DNA of 64,000 nucleotides from Penicillus capitatus (lineage: Eukaryota; Plantae; Chlorophyta). Below the pieces are notes generated by a model. That model saw only the letters and a program-made list of their open reading frames with translations. It did no database searches and was not told the origin of the DNA. Of the stretch, positions 676-40,008 are shown piece after piece (positions within the stretch are counted from its first letter, which is position 1; each line of letters begins with the position of its first letter). Location of the stretch: positions 1-64,000 of the forward strand of contig OZ287714.1 in assembly GCA_965649825.1 (NCBI GenBank), written 5' to 3'. The position numbers and the translations under genes are program-made.

Positions 676-3600
676 ATGCAGATCGAGTCAATTCCCTTTC
701 CACGCTATGATGGACGCAGTGACCCTAGGAGATGGGTCCACAAGATGACCACGCTCTTCCGATTGCAGGAAATCGACGACCTCCCAGGGACGCGCGCTGA
801 AATCGCAATCGCGCTGCTGGATGGACCAGCTGCCGATTGGGCAGAGCTCTATTTTGACGCCGCCGCAAACCTGCATGAGCAGTGGGCGGATTGGAGTCAG
901 GCCTTGACCGACCGGTTCGTACGCGAACAAGACCCGGAGCGTGCGCAGGACCTCGTCCGACATGTGTTCCAGAAGCGCGGGGAAACGCTGGTTGCTTACG
1001 CCGAGCGTTTCATGTTGATGTGCACTAGGGCTCGCCCCGCGTTGGACCATGACCGCTATCACAAATATTGGCTGAGGGGGCTGCGCGACGAACGCGCGGC
1101 GGAATATGCATTCACAGTACTTGCCGCGTCGGGTTTGGCGCCGACCTTTGACCACGCTTTCCGCTATGCAAAGCGCGCGACGGAAGCGAAAACAAACGTC
1201 CGTGGACGGGTGGAGACGGACGAAGAAGAAGATGAACCGGAACTGGAGCTGAGACCCTTGAAACGCGGGGCGACGGTCCGCCGAGGGGACGGAGCCCGTC
1301 GACTTGAGAGCTCGAAGCAAAAAACTACAACCATCGTCGCTGAACAACCGGCGGCGGATGACTCCGACGACGAAGAACTCCGCCAACTCCTCGCCGGACT
1401 GACCAGCCTACTCGCAAAGAAGCAAGAGAAGCGGCGAGCGAGACGCGCCGAAGGCAACGCGACCCGCTTTGTCGAATCCGTATCCGAGAGCGCAGACAAT
1501 GCGGATGTCGAAGCAACCGCCAGGATGGCGAATGGGGATGGACCCCCACCCAGTAAGCGACTCCGAGGCGCGTCGGGAAAGAAAGCGCGAAAGCCGCGCA
1601 AAAAACCCGAGCTCGACCGAGAATGGGCGGACTACGCTGCCCAAGCATGGGCCATTCCACTGCGATTCCTGAAAGGACGCAGCAAACGAGAAGTGTACTC
1701 CCAGGTGATTTTGGCACTAAGGGATGCCTTTGGCTTCACGCCGAAGCCGAAGAAAAAGAAAGCCGAGGAAGACCAGCCCTCCGCGTCGGCACCTCCGCCA
1801 CAGACCGACGTGGAAATGGAGCAACCCGCGCCAGCATCGCCTCCTCAGCAAACCGCCCTCGCTCAGAGGCGAGGTGCGAATGAGAAGCGCTGCAAGGTGT
1901 TCGTGGCGGGGCAGTTCGTTGCCAAAGTGATTGTCGACCCAGGATCGTCCCAGAGTATAATGAACAGTGCTTTCGCCAAACAGCATGGCGTGAAACACGC
2001 GACTCCAAGCCGGGGCACCTTGCTGTTGGCCGATGGATCCGTTCAAAAACCCTGGGGACGCACCGACGAGGTGCGCGTCGACGTCGGCGGAGTAGTCGTG
2101 CAGCAGACGTTTAGCGTTTTGCCAACAAGGAATTCTTACGATATCCTCCTCGGCACCGACTGGCTGCGCACCGTCCATGGAAGGGCCAACTTCGACGACG
2201 GGACTTACACCTTTGGTGTATCGAAGCGCATTGCCGTTGTTCCTAGATGGCGCAAGCTTTACTTCGCCAAGGAGCAACCCCGAACTGTGGAAGACGACGA
2301 CGACGCTTCCGACGCAAGCAGCGAGTCAGATATGGCAGCCGCTCTGGAGGAGTTGATTGAACAAATGCAAGCCCTCGCCAGCGAGAGTGAAAGTGAGGGT
2401 GAAAGCGAGAGCGAAGAAGAATGTTTTCTCGTGCTAAGCGACCAGGTACTGGGAGAACTGCATATTAACCCAAGATTGCAGCCTGAGGTGCTTTCGGGTA
2501 TCCGCTCCCTCGTTGGCGAATACGTAGATTGCTTTGCGTTGACCTTTGAAGACATGGTCAGAACGCCTCTGATGCAATTTGAAATCGAATTGCGCCAAGG
2601 AGAAGTCGCGAAGCGCTGCGGGCGCACGCGACGTTTGGCGCCAAAAGAAACCGAATTCGTGAAAGCCCAGATCGATGAGTTACTCAATGCTGGTCTGATC
2701 GTCCCCTGGGAAGAAGCTGCCAGACGATTCGGCTGCCCAAAGCGCAAGGATCGTTGGCTGTCGCCAATAACTATTGCGCCGAAGAAAGACGGTACCTTTC
2801 GTTTCTGTTGTGCCTACCAGAGGCTCAACGACGCCACTATTCCCGACAAGTTCGTTTTGCCACGGGCGGACGACTTACTCGATCGCGTCATGGGTCACGC
2901 ATGGTACTCGGCCCTAGACGGGTTCAGCGGATATTATTCCCTAGGGTTACATCCCGAGTCCGTAATGAAGACGGCTTTCGCTACAAGCTTTGGCGTCTTC
3001 TGTTGGCTCGTTCTCCCCTTTGGGGTGACGAACGGTCCCGCTGCCTACTCACGTTTAGTCGAGCAAGTATATGGCGGATTGGATCGAGTCGGCGTCTTCA
3101 TCGACGACGTCTGTTGTGCACACCAAGACGAGGCCGGCATCGTGGAAGACTTGCGACGCGTGTTCGAACGCTGTCGCGATGGAGGACTCCGTCTGAAGCC
3201 GAAGAAGTGTTTCGTCGGCTATCAAGAGGTCGATTTCCTTGGTCATCGGCTGTGCCCCGACGGAATGCGCATGGACGAAATCAAAGTCGAGAAAATATTG
3301 AAGATGCCTCCTCCCAAGGACAGAAAACAAATGCAATCCCTCTACGGCATGTTTTCGTACTACCGCCGTTTCCTCAAGAACTTCGCTAGCATAAGTGCGC
3401 CGCTGTCGAGCCTCCTGTCGACGCGTCGGGACTTCGAGTGGACTCCCGAGGCCCAAGGGGCACTGGAGGAGTTGAAGAAGCTCCTGGTCGACGGAGCTGT
3501 TCTAGCAGCCGTTGACGAGGACCTCCCTTTCCTGGTCGACACGGATGCTAGCGCGTATGGAGTCGGTGCCGTTCTGTCGCAAGAGCAAAATGGCGAGGAG

Positions 3601-5115
3601 CGACCGATCTACTTCTACTCTCGACTCCTGAAAGACGCTGAGACACGATACTCTACCACGGAGCGAGAGGGACTGGCATTGGTCGTTGGCTTAAAGAAAT
3701 TCCGCGTCTATGTTCTAGGGCGCAAAGTGGTCGCTCGAACTGACCATGCAGCACTGTCGCACATGCTGCGCAAAACAGACCTAACGGGTCGCATTGCCCG
3801 CTGGAAGCTCATCCTCTCCGAGTACGATGTTCATTACGTGACGAGGTCTGGGGAAAGGCACCGCAATGCTGACGGACTGAGTCGCCTGGTCGACGAAGAT
3901 TTGGCGCCGCGACCAGTCAATAACGAGGGAGAATGCGATGAATGCCCTGTTCTCGTGGCCGAAGAGGTTGCTGCTGCGTTCCAAGCTTGTCCAGAGTATG
4001 CAGAAGCCCTCTTGACAGCCAACGAACTAGGCAGTCGTTTCCGGTGGGGTGAGCGCAATCTCTTCTACGAAGACTTAGATGGCCGACGCAGAATTTGCTT
4101 GCTACCAAGCCAGGTCCGCGCGGTCATCTCCGAAGAACATTGCGTTGGGCACTTTTCCGCTGAAATAACCCTGCAAAGATTGAGACAACGCTACTGGTTT
4201 CCAAGGATGCGCAAACAAGTTCACAATGTCGTGAAGACCTGTCAGACCTGCCAGATGTTTGGCTCAAGACCCCCGATTCGAAGCACCCTCCCCATAGCTG
4301 TAGAAGAACCATGGGAGCTGGTTGAGCTGGATACGGTCGTCGGGCTGCCGGCGACACCTCGGAAGGCTGTTGGATTCGTGACAGCGATCGACTGCTTCAC
4401 GGGCTACGTAATAACTGAGGCATTGACGTCCATGGGAGCAGCGAAGACCCTCAAGTTCCTTGTCAATAAAGTCATTTGCGCTTGGGGCGTGCCGCAGAAG
4501 ATCCTGACGGACAACGGGACAGAGTTTCGAGGCGTTTTTGGCGAGACAGTGAAGAACCTGAAGATCGAGCACAAATGGTCTACACCACGTTACCCACGTA
4601 GCCATGGCAAGGTCGAGAACGTGCAGCGTCTCCTACTCGACCGCCTGAGGAAGTGTCCGAACCCGCGAAGCTGGGATGAAAACCTTCCGGCCGCGACCTT
4701 CGCCGTGAACGCGCGTCGAGGCAAGTTCCTGTCACCACTCGAACTTCTTACAGGGGTCGTCCCGAAAAGCCGCACAGAAGTGGATCTGTTGTCCGGCGAA
4801 CCTAGAGGTAGTGCAGAGCCGCTACAATCCGCCCTCGCCGATCGTCTGACGAACATGGCGCTCTGCCGCGAGCAGTTTCGTGACTCGTCTAAGAAGAGCC
4901 GCGAGTCCTGGACCAAGGAGGCTGGTATGCAGCGTATTGATCCCGGAACGGAGGTCCGTGTCTATCGACTTGAAAACCACGGAAAACTCGAGGCGACGTT
5001 CGAGAAGGGTGTCGTGACGTGGTGGGGGAATCAAGGAGCTTGCAAGGTGTTAGTGGGTGGCCGCGTGAAGAGAATGCCGCAGTTCTGTGTGAAGCCGTGG
5101 ATCGCTTCCCAATAA
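676..5115 (+). CDS. Gag-Pol polyprotein (capsid-type Gag, aspartic protease, RT, RNase H, integrase), 1479 aa, intronless and uninterrupted
   Basis: Gag (FPRYDG..W...QKRGETLVAYAERF..WLRGL); protease IVDPGS...ILLGTDWL; RT FRFCCAYQRLN, LPFGVTNGP, FIDD; RNase H VDTDAS..YSTTEREGLA..RTDHAAL; integrase H-H-C-C zinc finger and LDTV/TDNGTEF/GKVEN DDE. Confidence 0.97.
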   Translation: MQIESIPFPRYDGRSDPRRWVHKMTTLFRLQEIDDLPGTRAEIAIALLDGPAADWAELYFDAAANLHEQWADWSQALTDRFVREQDPERAQDLVRHVFQKRGETLVAYAERFMLMCTRARPALDHDRYHKYWLRGLRDERAAEYAFTVLAASGLAPTFDHAFRYAKRATEAKTNVRGRVETDEEEDEPELELRPLKRGATVRRGDGARRLESSKQKTTTIVAEQPAADDSDDEELRQLLAGLTSLLAKKQEKRRARRAEGNATRFVESVSESADNADVEATARMANGDGPPPSKRLRGASGKKARKPRKKPELDREWADYAAQAWAIPLRFLKGRSKREVYSQVILALRDAFGFTPKPKKKKAEEDQPSASAPPPQTDVEMEQPAPASPPQQTALAQRRGANEKRCKVFVAGQFVAKVIVDPGSSQSIMNSAFAKQHGVKHATPSRGTLLLADGSVQKPWGRTDEVRVDVGGVVVQQTFSVLPTRNSYDILLGTDWLRTVHGRANFDDGTYTFGVSKRIAVVPRWRKLYFAKEQPRTVEDDDDASDASSESDMAAALEELIEQMQALASESESEGESESEEECFLVLSDQVLGELHINPRLQPEVLSGIRSLVGEYVDCFALTFEDMVRTPLMQFEIELRQGEVAKRCGRTRRLAPKETEFVKAQIDELLNAGLIVPWEEAARRFGCPKRKDRWLSPITIAPKKDGTFRFCCAYQRLNDATIPDKFVLPRADDLLDRVMGHAWYSALDGFSGYYSLGLHPESVMKTAFATSFGVFCWLVLPFGVTNGPAAYSRLVEQVYGGLDRVGVFIDDVCCAHQDEAGIVEDLRRVFERCRDGGLRLKPKKCFVGYQEVDFLGHRLCPDGMRMDEIKVEKILKMPPPKDRKQMQSLYGMFSYYRRFLKNFASISAPLSSLLSTRRDFEWTPEAQGALEELKKLLVDGAVLAAVDEDLPFLVDTDASAYGVGAVLSQEQNGEERPIYFYSRLLKDAETRYSTTEREGLALVVGLKKFRVYVLGRKVVARTDHAALSHMLRKTDLTGRIARWKLILSEYDVHYVTRSGERHRNADGLSRLVDEDLAPRPVNNEGECDECPVLVAEEVAAAFQACPEYAEALLTANELGSRFRWGERNLFYEDLDGRRRICLLPSQVRAVISEEHCVGHFSAEITLQRLRQRYWFPRMRKQVHNVVKTCQTCQMFGSRPPIRSTLPIAVEEPWELVELDTVVGLPATPRKAVGFVTAIDCFTGYVITEALTSMGAAKTLKFLVNKVICAWGVPQKILTDNGTEFRGVFGETVKNLKIEHKWSTPRYPRSHGKVENVQRLLLDRLRKCPNPRSWDENLPAATFAVNARRGKFLSPLELLTGVVPKSRTEVDLLSGEPRGSAEPLQSALADRLTNMALCREQFRDSSKKSRESWTKEAGMQRIDPGTEVRVYRLENHGKLEATFEKGVVTWWGNQGACKVLVGGRVKRMPQFCVKPWIASQ

Positions 5116-25745: not shown

Positions 25746-25868
25746 TTTCGCAACTGCAGAGAGACACGGGAGAAAGAATGTTTATAGAAGGGGGTACACA
25801 ACAAACCGTCTGACCAAAGCGTCGAGGCACTCGTTGGACGAGGATGTGCCTATTCGTATATGACGGTT

Positions 25869-26239
25869 ATGAAAGTGCCCGTCGGCGATTTGAAGACGTT
25901 CATTGCGAAGGCGAGACTTGTCCAGCTGTACCGTGACTGTTGGCGTGAGGTGCAGAAAGCGCCCGAAAATACCAGACGTGAGGGGATGGTGGTGGTGGTT
26001 GGATGTTTGTGGCAATGTGTGTAGGGGATCTCGCCGAGTACGTGCGTTCGCAGTTTCGCGACGCCGATCTGCCCAGGACACCCTCCGCTCTACAGTTTCA
26101 GATCGAATCGGGAAGGCAGGAGCTCAAAAACTATCGTGCTTCGCTGGAAAGGACGCAACATAATCTCAAATACTTCCACGACGTCGACCCGCCCAAGCTT
26201 CTGTTTCACAAAAAGGTTATCAAGAGGAAGCCGCGATGA
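25869..26239 (+). CDS. LYR-motif protein (LYRM2-like)
   Basis: Two exons: MKVPVGDLKTFIAKARLVQLYRDCWREVQKAPENTR|RDLAEYVRSQFR...QIESGRQELK; stop TGA at 26237-26239. Confidence 0.8.
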
Positions 26240-29200
26240 AGCTGTCACATCAGTTTCTCGAACGCAAGAACCAGCAGGGATTATCGGGTCCGTGTCCCTT
26301 TGCCATGTCCGATGTGACATCTCACGGATTCGGCTGATTGAAGGGGACAGATCGCGCAAGGGGAGTGTCGATACAGCGATCGTCGATCTCATCGAGGAAA
26401 TGAATCGGCATCCTCTGATGTACACGACGAGCAGCTGTTCTGGAAGAGTGTCGCTTTTTGAAGAGGATCTGATGGGCTGTGTGGGAAGGAAGGGAGGGGA
26501 GTGGATCTACGTGTCCCATCAGGAGCCGGAATGGAATGAACTGTACGACGCAATGCAGAGATGGCGGGAAGGGGATGGGACGAAAAGGGAAGGGAAAGAC
26601 AAAAGATGGAACTTCCGTTTTGAACCGTTCATCGTGGCATGCGAATGCGGAACGCTGGAGACGGCACGGATGCTTGTGCAGATCGGCAGGGAAGCAGGAT
26701 TCCGTGAATCGGGCATCGTGCTGGGAAAGGATAGAATCCAGGCCACTGTTCGTTCCGCGGCGAGAACAGAGATTCCGGTGTGTGAGCACGGCATCATGCT
26801 GATGGCAGAGTCCTCTTGGGATGTGCTGTTGCGCATTGTGCGTGAGAAGTTTCGAAAGAATGGAGAGAAGATCGATGCTTTCCGGCATCTCTTTCATACG
26901 ACCTTTGCTTCGCAAACGGGACCATCCCTAGAAGCCACGCCAGACGACCGACGGCCTGCATACGAGGACGGATCCCTACGATGGCAGACAATGGCACCAA
27001 GACATGCCTCCGTTTGTCCATTCACACGGAGTGCAGAGATGCATGATGGACTGTTTCGAAGGGATTGGAGCGATGGGGACACAGCGTTTGCGCGGCGAAG
27101 AGTTCGGTGCTCATCTTTGGAGGATATGGTGGGAAGAGAGGCCATCAGCGACTCGACGATATGCTTCTCTACCATCCAGCCACCAACACTCTCACGGAGC
27201 AGACAGTCACCGGTGATATTCCTTCTCCAAGAATGGGTCATGCATCTGTCGCCGTGGGTGAGACGCGCGCACGTCTTGGGGAATCGATGAAGGATGAAAT
27301 GCACGACAGGGGACGCTGTGTACATTCTGGGAGGCAGGACGCATCCAGGCAACGCTCTGAGTGACGTCTATCGAGTGGATGTCGACAACTGGACAGCTGC
27401 TCAGCTGCCGGCATCGTTTCCTGCGCGATTCCGTCACAGCGCCTGTGTGTACGGAGAGGCAAAGATCGTTGTGTTTGGCGGATGCACATCCGAAGGACCT
27501 ATGAATGACGTCTGGATGATGGATGCCAAGCAACAGGAGATCTTTACACCGATCAAGACTCAAGGCCCGAGTCCAATGCCACGCATGAGTCACGGAGCAT
27601 GTGTACAGGGAGATTGGCTCTTTGTGCACGGAGGGTTTGCAGACTATGGCCGTGTGTACAGCGATCTTTTCAAACTGAATCTGAAGACGTTTTCGTGGGA
27701 AGCCGTCTGTATGGATCCGTTTCGCCTGCCGGAGTGCTTCTCGCATTCTTTGGTGGCCCTGGATGAAAACATTCTTGCCGTCATCGGCGGCTGTGGTCAG
27801 GCCGAACCTGAGAGAATCACTCTCTTCGATCCGGGCAGTAAAAGTGTGAGGGTGTTGAGGACAGAGATCCCTACCGAGGCAGCATGGGTGCCCATACGGC
27901 AGGCGGCTCTGGTGCTTGAAGACCGACTGTTTGTCGTCGGCGGGGGTGCTTTTTGTTTCAGTTTCGGATCTGCTTTCAGCTCCTCCTTCTCGATGGAACG
28001 CTCTCACCTTGTTTTGCTCTTTAAATCTGGCACGGCGAGGAAAGTCGATATTGATGTGCCATCTGCGAGGAGTGAGAGAGTCGTGGGGATTGTTACGAAA
28101 AAGACCGAAGCCAAGAGGGTGAAGGACACACTCAAGGTCCTCAACTGGCTGGATCCTGCGTACAAGAGCACGGTCTTGGAGATGGGGAACAGAATTGCTT
28201 TTCCCGTTCTGGCGGCCCACAGCCAATCCGTGGATGCGCTCCACACCGTCGCTTCGCCCAGAGCCTGGGCAGAGGAGAAGAAGATCGATCGCGACGCCGT
28301 GTATCAGCTGTATGAATGGCTGTGCAATGGAATGGCCACGGTGCAGTGCATGGATTTCGTTCGTTCTAGTGCAGCGAGCACACTCTCCCCTGCCAAGCGG
28401 CTAAGACAGATGATGGCATCTCGATTGAAGGCACTCGATGTGAAAGACGCCGAGACGTTGATGAGAGAGCTCCCAGAAAAATGGGAGAAGTTGGGAGACA
28501 TGATGCTGTTGCCTGCAGAGAGCATGTGCTCTCCCTTCTGGACAAAAGGTTTTGGAAACGATCTGTGGAAAGACGTGGCCGAAGTGCTGGAAGGCCGTCG
28601 ACTCGCCCGGCAAGCCACCATCCGCGCATCCGGTATAAGATGCCTTCTGCTGCGACCCAGGCGAGTAGCTGTGTGGTTTTAGAGACAAGAGATGCGCGGG
28701 TGGTATTGCTCTATGGCGAAGACGGTTGGGTCACACACAAAGAGAACGGCATCTCTTTTCAGCTGGATGTCACAAAGTGTATGTTCAGTTCGGGAAACGT
28801 CTCGGAAAGAATGAGAATGAGTGAGCTGAGCTGCCACGGTGAAACAATCGTAGATCTCTATGCCGGCATTGGATACTATACACTGCCTCTCCTCAAGCAA
28901 GGCTGTGCGGAGAAGGTTCGCATCCTTGTGTCGTTTATGACGAGATCTATGCAGCTGCTGTGAAGGTGATTGCCTGCGAATGGAATCGACATGCTGTGAA
29001 GGCTCTGAAACTGAATCTACGGGCGAACGGCGTTGCGGATCGTTGCACCGTCCTCTTCGGCGACAGTCGTCGGATAGCTCCCGAATGTGTTGCTGATCGA
29101 GTGATTCTGGGATTGCTGCCATCCAGCAAAGGCGGCTGGAAGACAGCCCTGACGTGCTTGAAAGCGACAGGTGGTTGGCTACACCTTCACGAGAACGTCA

Positions 29201-30449
29201 CTGATCGAGATGAGGAGAGCTGGATGCAAGACACGCTCAACGAACTGAGAACGATGTCCGTCGAGATGCAAAGGAACTGGAGTATATCCGTGGAGCACCG
29301 TGAACACGTGAAGTGGTATGCCCCACACATCCGACACGTGGTGCTGGACATCCGCTGCCAAGTGCCAACAGCGAACACCGATCTCCCATTGTCCTCGCCG
29401 AGAGCGAACAGCATCTCCATCATCGACGCTCCGTCTGCAGATCGATTCTGGGCAGAGATCGTAGCCAAGAGACGTCCTGTCCTGATCCAACGTACGTCCC
29501 CTCTTCCACGGAGATCGTGCTTGGAAAGGGGACGGGGCTGTGTGTCAGATATGGATGTGGGGTGTGCTGTCGGTCAGTGGTCTGCTGACTATCTGATGGG
29601 GCACGCCGAGGCGAAAGAGACGCGTGTGAGTGTCCACGTTTGCCCAGATGCGAAAGGAAGGATGCGTTTCGTTCCACGTAACTTTGAGTTTCACACCATG
29701 TCCTTCTCGGAACTCATCCAGCGATGCACCTCTGCTCACCGTCTCTCTCCTCTGATCCAGCCAGGAGAGCACTATTATCTCAGAAGCATCGGTCAGAATC
29801 CGAGGAAGGTACACGCGGCGCCTCGCTTGCGCAACATCTCCCCTGCGATTCTGTCCCGCAGGAGAGGTCATCGATTCACGCAGCCTTCCCGCAACTGGCA
29901 CAGGAAGTGAAGCTTCCTTTGTGGATCGCCAAGGAGCGTGTCTTCTCCACCGTGCTGCGCGTCAGTTCGCCGCGGCTGCAGCTGTGGACCCACTTCGATG
30001 TGATGGACAATCTTCTCATCCACATCACGGGGAGAAAACGCGTCAGGATGTGGCCGCCGTCTGACGATGCCCGTCTCTATGTGACGGGATCGAGTTCGGA
30101 AGTGACAGATGTCGAGCATCCCGATCCCACACAGTATCCAAACTTCAAACCGCCGACCCTCGAGTTCGATCTCCTTCCTGGCGATGTCCTGTACATTCCT
30201 GCCCTCTGGTTCCATCACGTCACATCAGAGAGCTTCGCGGTCTCCGTCAATCTTTTCTTCCGTCACCTCGCCGATGAGACCTACGATCCCAAGGATCTCT
30301 ACGGAAACAGAGATCCATTGCCAGTGCAAGAGGCAACGGCGTTTATGGATCGCATCCTGAAGCTTCTCCATTCCCTGCCTCCCGATTTTCGACAGTTCTA
30401 TGGACAGAGACTGCAAAAGCAATTCGCAAATGGACTCGATGGTTGTTGA
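26236..30449 (+). CDS. Wybutosine-pathway fusion protein TYW3-Kelch-TYW2(Trm12)-TYW5(JmjC)
   Basis: TYW3: DRSRKGSVD...YTTSSCSGR; Kelch repeats (LIFGGYGG, YILGGR, VFGG, VHGG); TYW2: GWVTHKENGI...CMFSSGN...VDLYAGIGYYT, DRVILGLLPSS, VKWYAPHIRHVVLD; TYW5: YYLRSIG.NPRK, LWTHFDVMDN, GDVLYIPALWFHHV. All junctions splice in frame and there is no stop between TYW2 and JmjC. Confidence 0.88.
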
Positions 30450-30667
30450 GTCTGATGTGACATTTAACGAATGCTTCTTCTGGACGAATTGAACAAGAAA
30501 GGACATTGAGTCGTTTCGTTGACCCGTCACTTCCTGTACGCGCAAGTCGTCAGTTTCTCTTCATACTTTCGCGTTTCAGGTAGACACCGTGGCGTCACTC
30601 GTTACGCGTCACCCGTTTCCATGCAGGTTCTCTTTTTTGCGGCGTCTGTTGGACGAAAATGCGGCCG

Positions 30668-39387: not shown

Positions 39388-39665
39388 AATCTGATCACGA
39401 AGCGAACTTGTGGAGTTCGTATGTCTGTCCTCTGGTTCAAATTGACTGTGTTATTCCTGAAAGCTTCTGCGATTAAAACAGACATTCGTTCGCTGGTTCT
39501 GCTGTTGAGAGTGTGTAATCGGAGCTGAGGACTTTGAATAATGGGGTAATGTATCCAGTTTTCAAGGGTTTCAACTTTCCTGTGCACTCTGCTGGTGTCT
39601 ATCTTGACGATTCCGAACGAAAAGAGCCAAAAATGTCCATTGACGAAATGGCGGCTGGGTTCAAT

Positions 39666-39753
39666 GCCTCGGTGGCTCAGTTGGTTAGAGCGTCGGTCTC
39701 ATAGCACAAAGTGGGAAATCCGGAGGTCGTGAGTTCGATCCTCACCCGGGGCA
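39666..39753 (+). tRNA. tRNA-Met(CAT), elongator type, with a 14-nt intron at 39704-39717
   Basis: GCCTCGG acceptor paired with CCGGGGC-A; D arm GCTCAGTTGGTTAGAGC; anticodon loop CTCATA^A with U31-U39 typical of elongator Met; T loop GTTCGATC; followed by a TTTTT Pol III terminator. Confidence 0.93.
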
Positions 39754-40008
39754 GACACTTTTTACCATGTCGAGCGACGATAGCGTCACCGTCCATGTAT
39801 CAACGGACATCTGCTGCTTCTCGATTGACGGCTAGCCTCTCGTAGCGTCGAGCTCGTCATTGCGTCAGTGGCAGGATCGAAAGGGCGTCGCTGTTACTGA
39901 ACAGTCGTGTGTATGTCGTGACGGAAACGACGCCGTCGCTGTCACATCGCAAGGGACACTGGTGGTTCTTTCTGCGACGTCACGCGATTCTCTCAGCAAA
40001 GGTAAAGG

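Follow-up and report, generated by a model that had tools for sequence, protein, structure and literature searches.

In the established route to wybutosine (yW) and hydroxywybutosine (OHyW), TYW2 forms yW-86, TYW3 forms yW-72, TYW5 hydroxylates yW-72 to OHyW*, and TYW4 completes OHyW (PMC5311493, PMC3045595). According to the accessible part of the survey by Iyer, Abhiman, de Souza and Aravind (2010, NAR 38:5261, PMC2938197), a JmjC domain is joined C-terminally to a Tyw3+Tyw2 unit in chlorophyte algae, an arrangement which was the basis for predicting the yW hydroxylase, and in plants and stramenopiles Tyw3 and Tyw2 are separated by a Kelch domain. The same text reports that the yW hydroxylase has been lost altogether in multicellular plants. 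Here, we describe a gene of the green alga Penicillus capitatus in which these arrangements are combined. It occupies positions 26236-30449 on the forward strand of a 64,000-nucleotide stretch of DNA (assembly GCA_965649825.1, contig OZ287714.1, positions 1 to 64,000; hereafter the window). We are confident that it is a genuine single nuclear gene encoding a TYW3-Kelch-TYW2-TYW5 wybutosine-synthesis enzyme, the activities of which are predicted from sequence. As far as the accessible text of the 2010 survey goes, the four-module architecture is the union of two published architectures, and the functional reading is the published one; no later discussion of the four-module architecture was found in the literature searched.

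The chlorophyte Tyw3+Tyw2+JmjC unit resembles the window protein in module order, in its green-algal host and in its functional reading. A first-pass annotation of this DNA knew of no description of the four-module fusion, and novelty cannot be upheld in view of the publication of Tyw3+Tyw2+JmjC in chlorophytes in 2010 (PMC2938197, accessible part). What the window protein adds is a Kelch domain of ~290 amino acids (aa) between TYW3 and TYW2, whereas the accessible 2010 text describes the chlorophyte unit without Kelch. This insert is the sole departure from the chlorophyte architecture described there, and both the nearest relatives of the protein and the LYR-motif gene next to it are green-algal. 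A second likeness is to the TYW4-JmjC fusions of some ascomycetes, choanoflagellates and kinetoplastids, which, in the same part of the survey, also carry yW hydroxylase, Kelch and another yW enzyme in one polypeptide; there, however, the partner is an LCM methyltransferase with Kelch instead of TYW3 and TYW2, and LCM is missing from the window protein. The land-plant proteins named 'tRNA wybutosine-synthesizing protein 2/3/4' (for example those of rice, P0042, and Marchantia, P0006) share the TYW3-Kelch-TYW2 order and likewise lack LCM, at 33-37% identity over ~73% of the query, but they end after TYW2. We take Arabidopsis At4g04670 to be an example of this group. Human TYW5 (C2orf60; PDB 3AL5/3AL6) has the iron, 2-oxoglutarate and substrate-arginine residues and the dimerisation helices in common with the C-terminal part of the window protein, and differs in being a stand-alone protein of 315 aa.

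The gene model was built from a three-frame reading of positions 26136-30449, in which the open reading frames (ORFs) lie in shifting frames, together with all GT...AG pairs that keep the frame open, and was supported by Pfam and by orthologue alignment. Already the unspliced ORF pieces matched TYW3 (2.9e-46), Kelch families (down to 5e-36), TRM5-TYW2_MTfase (1.4e-18 and 2.4e-10) and Cupin_8 (3.6e-31), values that chance could not account for. Translation is predicted to start at ATG 26236, the first ATG past an in-frame stop, and to end at the TGA at 30447-30449. The model comprises eight exons (26236-26287, 26344-27011, 27062-27257, 27310-28632, 28683-28915, 28966-29491, 29549-29808 and 29862-30449) separated by seven introns (26288-26343, 27012-27061, 27258-27309, 28633-28682, 28916-28965, 29492-29548 and 29809-29861) of 56, 50, 52, 50, 50, 57 and 53 nucleotides (nt), all seven of which are bounded by GT and AG. 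Together with the intron of the upstream LYR gene (25978-26024), they are short and strikingly uniform, at 47-57 nt and GT-AG throughout. The resulting open frame of 3,846 nt encodes a product of 1,281 aa and 144 kDa. At each of the seven splice junctions the protein is colinear, without gaps, with the orthologues of Caulerpa, Bryopsis and Coccomyxa, which provides independent support for the model.

The join between TYW2 and JmjC lies wholly within exon 6 (28966-29491), which holds the C-terminal end of TYW2 (aa 955, nt 29358), a linker of 21 aa (29359-29421) and the start of the JmjC module (aa 977, nt 29422). In an alignment of 12 sequences this linker is poorly conserved and its length differs among species. 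Intron 6 (57 nt) keeps the frame and contains no stop; even if it were retained, TYW2 would read continuously into JmjC. The first-pass annotation had described an ORF at 28960-29910 with neither stop nor intron at the join, which is present as stated; it had further read TYW3, Kelch, TYW2 and JmjC as one spliced frame, in agreement with the spliced model and Pfam, and its coordinates coincide with the start and end of our final model.

The N-terminal TYW3 module (aa 15-201, 26278-26894) spans intron 1 and matches Pfam PF02676 at 2.2e-45 in the spliced protein, with 155 bits against a cut-off of 27; the Taw3 homologues 2QG3 and 2DRV in the PDB match it at ~1e-12. The TYW3/Taw3 class has been defined by eight residues, comprising an invariant Asp, an (S/T)xSSCxGR motif and a His (Currie et al. 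2017, PMC5311493). All eight are present, as D27, the stretch T45-T46-S47-S48-C49-S50-G51-R52, and H76, and these positions are either invariant or at least 90% conserved across the 12-sequence alignment, T45 and C49 falling into the latter group owing to one broken database model. The module is thus predicted to be a tRNA-yW N4-methyltransferase. It is followed by a Kelch beta-propeller (aa 246 to ~520, 27077-27953), which is split by intron 3 and is recognised by PF24681 (3.7e-86) and PF13418 (2.6e-31), and which occupies the position of the TYW4-type propeller in plant 'TYW2/3/4' proteins.

The third module (aa 675-955, 28416-29358) spans introns 4 and 5 and consists of an N-terminal TYW2 domain and a class I aminocarboxypropyl transferase domain dependent on S-adenosylmethionine (SAM). 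TYW2_N_2 was recognised at aa 686-761 (PF25133, 35.3 bits against a cut-off of 27.7) and the methyltransferase domain at aa 764-905 (PF02475, 1.9e-34, 119.5 bits, cut-off 28). Across the orthologues, the SAM motif VDLYAGIGYYTLP (D804, G808-G810) is invariant, as are about forty more columns. Compared with the PDB, the module matches the archaeal TYW2 proteins best (structures 3A25/3K6R at ~1e-36), with PH0793 at 1.2e-36 and MJ1557 at 7.5e-28, versus 2e-23 for Trm5b and 5e-12 for Trm5a. By these scores the middle methyltransferase module is nearer to TYW2/Taw2 than to Trm5.

The C-terminal module (aa 977-1271, 29422-30416) spans introns 6 and 7 and contains a Cupin_8 match at aa 984-1223 (1.9e-39). 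Among all PDB sequences, human TYW5 (3AL5) aligns over aa 977-1271 with residues 34-325 of the chain, at an E-value of 2.6e-79, 270 bits and ~50% identity over 295 aa, while the paralogous JmjC families are weaker, with 46 bits for JMJD5 (~1e-11), 37 for JMJD7 and 36 for FIH (~1e-8). In human TYW5, H160, D162 and H235 are the iron ligands, Y106, N166 and K175 contact 2-oxoglutarate (Kato et al. 2011, PMC3045595), and mutation of the TYW5-specific residues R108 and R149 abolishes OHyW* formation (PMC3045595). In the window protein the Fe(II) facial triad H-x-D...H is intact as H1130, D1132 and H1204, which line up with the ligands of human TYW5 and bear out the first-pass annotation on this point; the 2-oxoglutarate contacts are intact as Y1076, N1136 and K1145, and the TYW5-specific arginines as R1078 and R1119. 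The C-terminal helices of the human enzyme are needed for dimerisation and tRNA binding (PMC3045595), and the alignment extends over the helical region that mediates dimerisation there. Judged from these matches, the C-terminal JmjC part is an orthologue of TYW5. As the dimerisation helices are retained, the fusion enzyme probably acts as a homodimer.

A different reading would split the locus into two transcription units, with TYW5 forming a gene of its own downstream of a plant-like TYW3-Kelch-TYW2 gene and the open join being incidental or belonging to a minor read-through isoform. Such a division would match the land-plant proteins, which end directly past TYW2, and animal TYW5, which is stand-alone (P0234), as the first-pass annotation had correctly stated. 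Yet the join measures just 21 codons within one exon and contains no stop, and a separate TYW5 would be left without an ATG start because the N-terminal strand of the JmjC domain begins right past the linker. In addition, no fewer than 83 proteins from the searches described below retain the fusion, among them intronless ORFs and one transcript. A weaker argument is that the sequence TGTAA does not occur on the forward strand between 21249 and 30710, given that the poly(A) signal may differ in this alga; TGTAA is not enriched in the window (66 copies versus 60 expected) and its first downstream copy lies inside the next gene, so little weight is placed on it. Taken together, we regard two units as very unlikely. 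No more credible is the view that the gene is a decaying copy, either a pseudogene or a fusion with one or more inactive modules. Nothing specific speaks for decay beyond the general observation that multidomain fusions sometimes carry dead modules, whereas the frame stays open for its whole length through seven canonical introns, all defined catalytic and binding residues of TYW3 and TYW5 are intact, and the SAM motif of TYW2 is retained along with the columns that are invariant across 12 orthologues. The JmjC module might also act on another substrate, either a protein, as FIH and JMJD5 do, or another nucleoside, in which case the fusion would be regulatory rather than pathway-related. The JmjC/Cupin_8 superfamily mostly modifies peptides, according to the accessible part of the 2010 survey (PMC2938197). 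The score of 270 bits with human TYW5 against 46 with JMJD5 and 36 with FIH, and the conservation, as R1078 and R1119, of the two arginines that are essential for OHyW* in the human enzyme, nevertheless point to the wybutosine pathway, and fusion to two yW enzymes is the very context that first predicted the function later confirmed for human TYW5. A deviating substrate therefore appears most improbable.

Several points weigh against the single four-module wybutosine enzyme that we favour. By sequence, the propeller is no nearer to yeast TYW4 than to generic Kelch proteins: residues 394-684 of the yeast TYW4 structure 2ZW9 align with aa 250-528 at 1.4e-8, and generic Kelch proteins score better, for example LZTR1 at 1e-20, so that a TYW4 origin is suggested by where it lies and by the literature (PMC2938197, accessible part). 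Furthermore, the modules follow one another as TYW3, TYW2 and TYW5, while the reactions proceed in the order TYW2, TYW3 and TYW5, which argues against a strict conveyor-belt mechanism. The activities in the alga are predicted by homology, separate TYW3-Kelch-TYW2 and TYW5 products might arise through alternative polyadenylation or splicing, and the presence of TYW1, TRM5 and LCMT elsewhere in the genome is an assumption.

The reaction sequence proposed for the fusion protein would start with the TYW2 module, which would move the aminocarboxypropyl group of SAM onto imG-14 at position 37 of tRNA-Phe to yield yW-86. The TYW3 module would then N4-methylate yW-86 to yW-72, and the TYW5 module would hydroxylate yW-72 to OHyW*. 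That the protein takes G37 of tRNA-Phe from imG-14 to hydroxylated yW-72 is a well-supported prediction. The first-pass annotation had called the protein an assembly-line enzyme, a term that is only loosely apt in view of the module order; owing to this mismatch, the benefit of the fusion more likely lies in co-localisation and fixed stoichiometry than in a literal conveyor.

The final methylation and methoxycarbonylation to OHyW would need an LCM-type methyltransferase. Pfam detected an LCM domain neither in the fusion protein (E <= 1e-3), where the first-pass annotation had also noted its absence, nor in the ten longest of the remaining window ORFs, and the fusion protein is therefore not a TYW4. 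The first-pass annotation had suggested that the end product may be OHyW* unless TYW4 is encoded elsewhere. This concern is addressed in the accessible text of the 2010 survey (PMC2938197), according to which a solo LCMT that may replace TYW4 is present in those lineages whose Kelch domain is placed between Tyw3 and Tyw2, and a separately encoded solo LCMT would be the likeliest source of the last activity in the alga as well. Yeast TYW4 owes its acceptance of a nucleobase to a Kelch-domain hairpin that constricts the LCM pocket (PMC3045595). It is plausible that the embedded Kelch propeller, as the presumed counterpart of the C-terminal domain of TYW4, plays the same role in trans for a solo LCMT, or else helps to hold the tRNA.

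To place the protein among its relatives, the full model was searched against 5.8 billion proteins, a second search was carried out with the TYW2-JmjC half, and 377 fetched proteins were classed by phmmer against the four window modules. TYW2 is fused to TYW5 in 83 of the 377, namely as TYW3-Kelch-TYW2-TYW5 in 15 (~12 distinct clusters), as TYW3-TYW2-TYW5 in 46 (for example in Apatococcus, Chlorokybus and many metagenomic sequences), as TYW2-TYW5 in 20 and as Kelch-TYW2-TYW5 in 2. The land-plant architecture named in the first-pass annotation, TYW3-Kelch-TYW2, accounts for 141 proteins, and the land-plant 'TYW2/3/4' proteins, of which the 5.8-billion-protein search recovered hundreds, end after TYW2. 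The identical four-module order occurs in Caulerpa lentillifera (P0001), which is the closest match with 48% identity over 98% of the length, in Bryopsis sp. KO-2023 (BSKO_08250, P0002), Coccomyxa elongata (g6068, P0003), and the thraustochytrids Hondaea fermentalgiana (P0107) and Mucochytrium quahogii (P0036/P0121, from a transcriptome), and in several metagenomic proteins. An identical protein was not present in the collection searched. These orthologues are 31-48% identical to the window protein and have longer TYW2-JmjC linkers, of up to ~150 aa compared with 21 aa in the window. The architecture is therefore not new, contrary to what the first-pass annotation had supposed, as ~12 other clusters, including those of Caulerpa, Bryopsis, Coccomyxa, Hondaea and Mucochytrium, have the same order. 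Whether it might already be widespread and annotated had been raised there as well, and this largely applies: it is widespread, while most entries are labelled 'hypothetical protein'. The second search added further fusions, which are found in Coccomyxa subellipsoidea, Chlamydomonas eustigma, Volvox and Chlorokybus as well as in many environmental sequences.

A HMMER search with the junction stretch 28966-29808 against 1.84 billion cluster representatives gave 41 matches below 1e-30, and at least 21 of the top 150 representatives align over the TYW2-JmjC join in one stretch. In Hondaea fermentalgiana (L005 5001-9020) and on an ENA contig (L006 5001-9575) the four modules form one intronless ORF, a Mucochytrium transcript of 4,660 nt encodes a four-module protein of 1,461 aa, and in Coccomyxa elongata the join is covered by one exon. 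Given these intronless ORFs, the transcript and the join-spanning exon in other organisms, the fusion is not an artefact of gene prediction. That labyrinthulomycetes, which are stramenopiles, share the four-module order with green algae could reflect either common ancestry or gene transfer.

The comparison also exposes annotation errors in public algal genomes. Coccomyxa subellipsoidea (P0151, 'Clavaminate synthase-like protein, partial') was considered as a natural variant without Kelch and rejected, as the Kelch exons lie within its 'intron': tblastn finds five Kelch-coding stretches there, at L004 6947-9151 (AGSI01000002.1). The true gene of strain C-169 is probably four-module and its public annotation incomplete. 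The Apatococcus fuscideae model P0005 (1,447 aa; L002 6001-25229, JALJOV010000686.1) merges the first exon of a LYR gene, the TYW3-TYW2-TYW5 gene and a DnaJ gene located ~1.8 kb downstream. Kelch exons were not detected in this locus, and Apatococcus may truly be without the propeller.

Seen against the accessible text of the 2010 survey, the window gene is one more orthologue of a fusion family known since then, which acted as a 'Rosetta stone' for the prediction of TYW5, and as such it matters little. What the comparison does establish is that single proteins of several green-algal classes and of labyrinthulomycetes unite the Kelch- and the JmjC-containing architecture; this suggests that land plants lost the JmjC end and that some algae lost the Kelch insert. 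With its short linker and intact active sites, the compact window version could be a handy construct for studying whether fused yW enzymes hand the tRNA over between sites and whether a solo LCMT docks on the presumed detached TYW4 propeller.

A more interesting lead than the fusion itself is the pairing of the gene with its upstream neighbour on the same strand, a LYR-motif gene of 110 aa at 25860-26239 (exons 25860-25977 and 26025-26239; Complex1_LYR, 6.6e-9). The sequence ATGA at 26236-26239 combines the ATG that starts the fusion gene (26236-26238) with the TGA that ends the LYR gene (26237-26239), an overlap which corresponds to an inter-ORF distance of -4 nt; the next gene upstream, encoding a DEAD-box helicase, ends ~650 nt before the LYR gene. 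The order of LYR followed by TYW is kept in five green algae, the window included, in each case on the same strand. The distance between LYR stop and TYW start is 150 nt in Bryopsis sp. KO-2023 (LYR at L001 5363-5850, annotated), ~20 nt in Apatococcus fuscideae (L002 6001-6319, merged into the TYW3 gene model that also includes the DnaJ gene), ~260 nt in Coccomyxa elongata (L003 4255-4738, unannotated) and ~200 nt in Coccomyxa subellipsoidea (L004 4147-4605, unannotated). By tblastn, the window LYR protein finds the Bryopsis copy only, and the closer Apatococcus query uncovers the two unannotated Coccomyxa copies. The pair was not found in the two labyrinthulomycete-type loci, those of Hondaea and the ENA contig.

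Bicistronic loci of green algae have been characterised by two ORFs on one mature mRNA, a short distance between them, a small ORF1 and conserved colinearity, and LYR-motif proteins are common on such mRNAs, as stated in the accessible part of Gallaher et al. (2021, PMC7896298). Evidence for leaky scanning has been presented by Duenas et al. (2024, PMC11291117), who also report some overlaps of stop and start and put median inter-ORF distances at 40-183 nt. Judged by its short distance, its small ORF1 and its conserved colinearity, the LYR-TYW pair looks like a conserved bicistronic locus with a putative shared mRNA. In the spliced ORF1, no ATG occurs in any frame from its own start (Met1/Met4) to the ATG of ORF2, a depletion which leaky scanning would predict but which is not significant in a codon shuffle (p about 0.27), and the first ATG of ORF1 is in a weak context with T at -3. 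As a tentative and rather unlikely extension, the LYR ORF and the fusion gene might share an obligately bicistronic mRNA kept across Ulvophyceae and Trebouxiophyceae, with translation of the enzyme depending either on leaky scanning or on termination-reinitiation at the ATGA; the pairing would then reflect a real functional coupling, for example through a LYR adaptor that links iron-sulphur or acyl-carrier status to wybutosine synthesis. TYW1, an enzyme of the same pathway, is a 4Fe-4S radical-SAM protein. If true, a cytosolic enzyme of tRNA modification would here be paired, much as in an operon, with an assembly factor of the mitochondrial type.

Over the 35 kb from ~22500 to 58000, nearly all large ORFs of the window lie on the forward strand, among them genes for the DEAD-box helicase, the LYR protein, the TYW fusion, a CCCH zinc-finger protein, E2F/DP, an F-box/WD40 protein, TDP1 and an ABC1 kinase. 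The intergenic gaps are very short, such as the ~210 nt from the TYW stop at 30449 to the next candidate ATG at 30659, and the genome looks compact and locally co-oriented. The 'tRNA-???' of 90 nt that ARAGORN places at 39665-39754 on the forward strand, with an anticodon of four bases (cata), probably represents a spurious prediction or else a degenerate tRNA-like element. Finally, a single ORF of 1,479 aa at 676-5115 on the forward strand contains gag, aspartyl protease, reverse transcriptase, RNase H and integrase domains and looks like an intact Ty3/gypsy-type long terminal repeat retrotransposon of the host alga.

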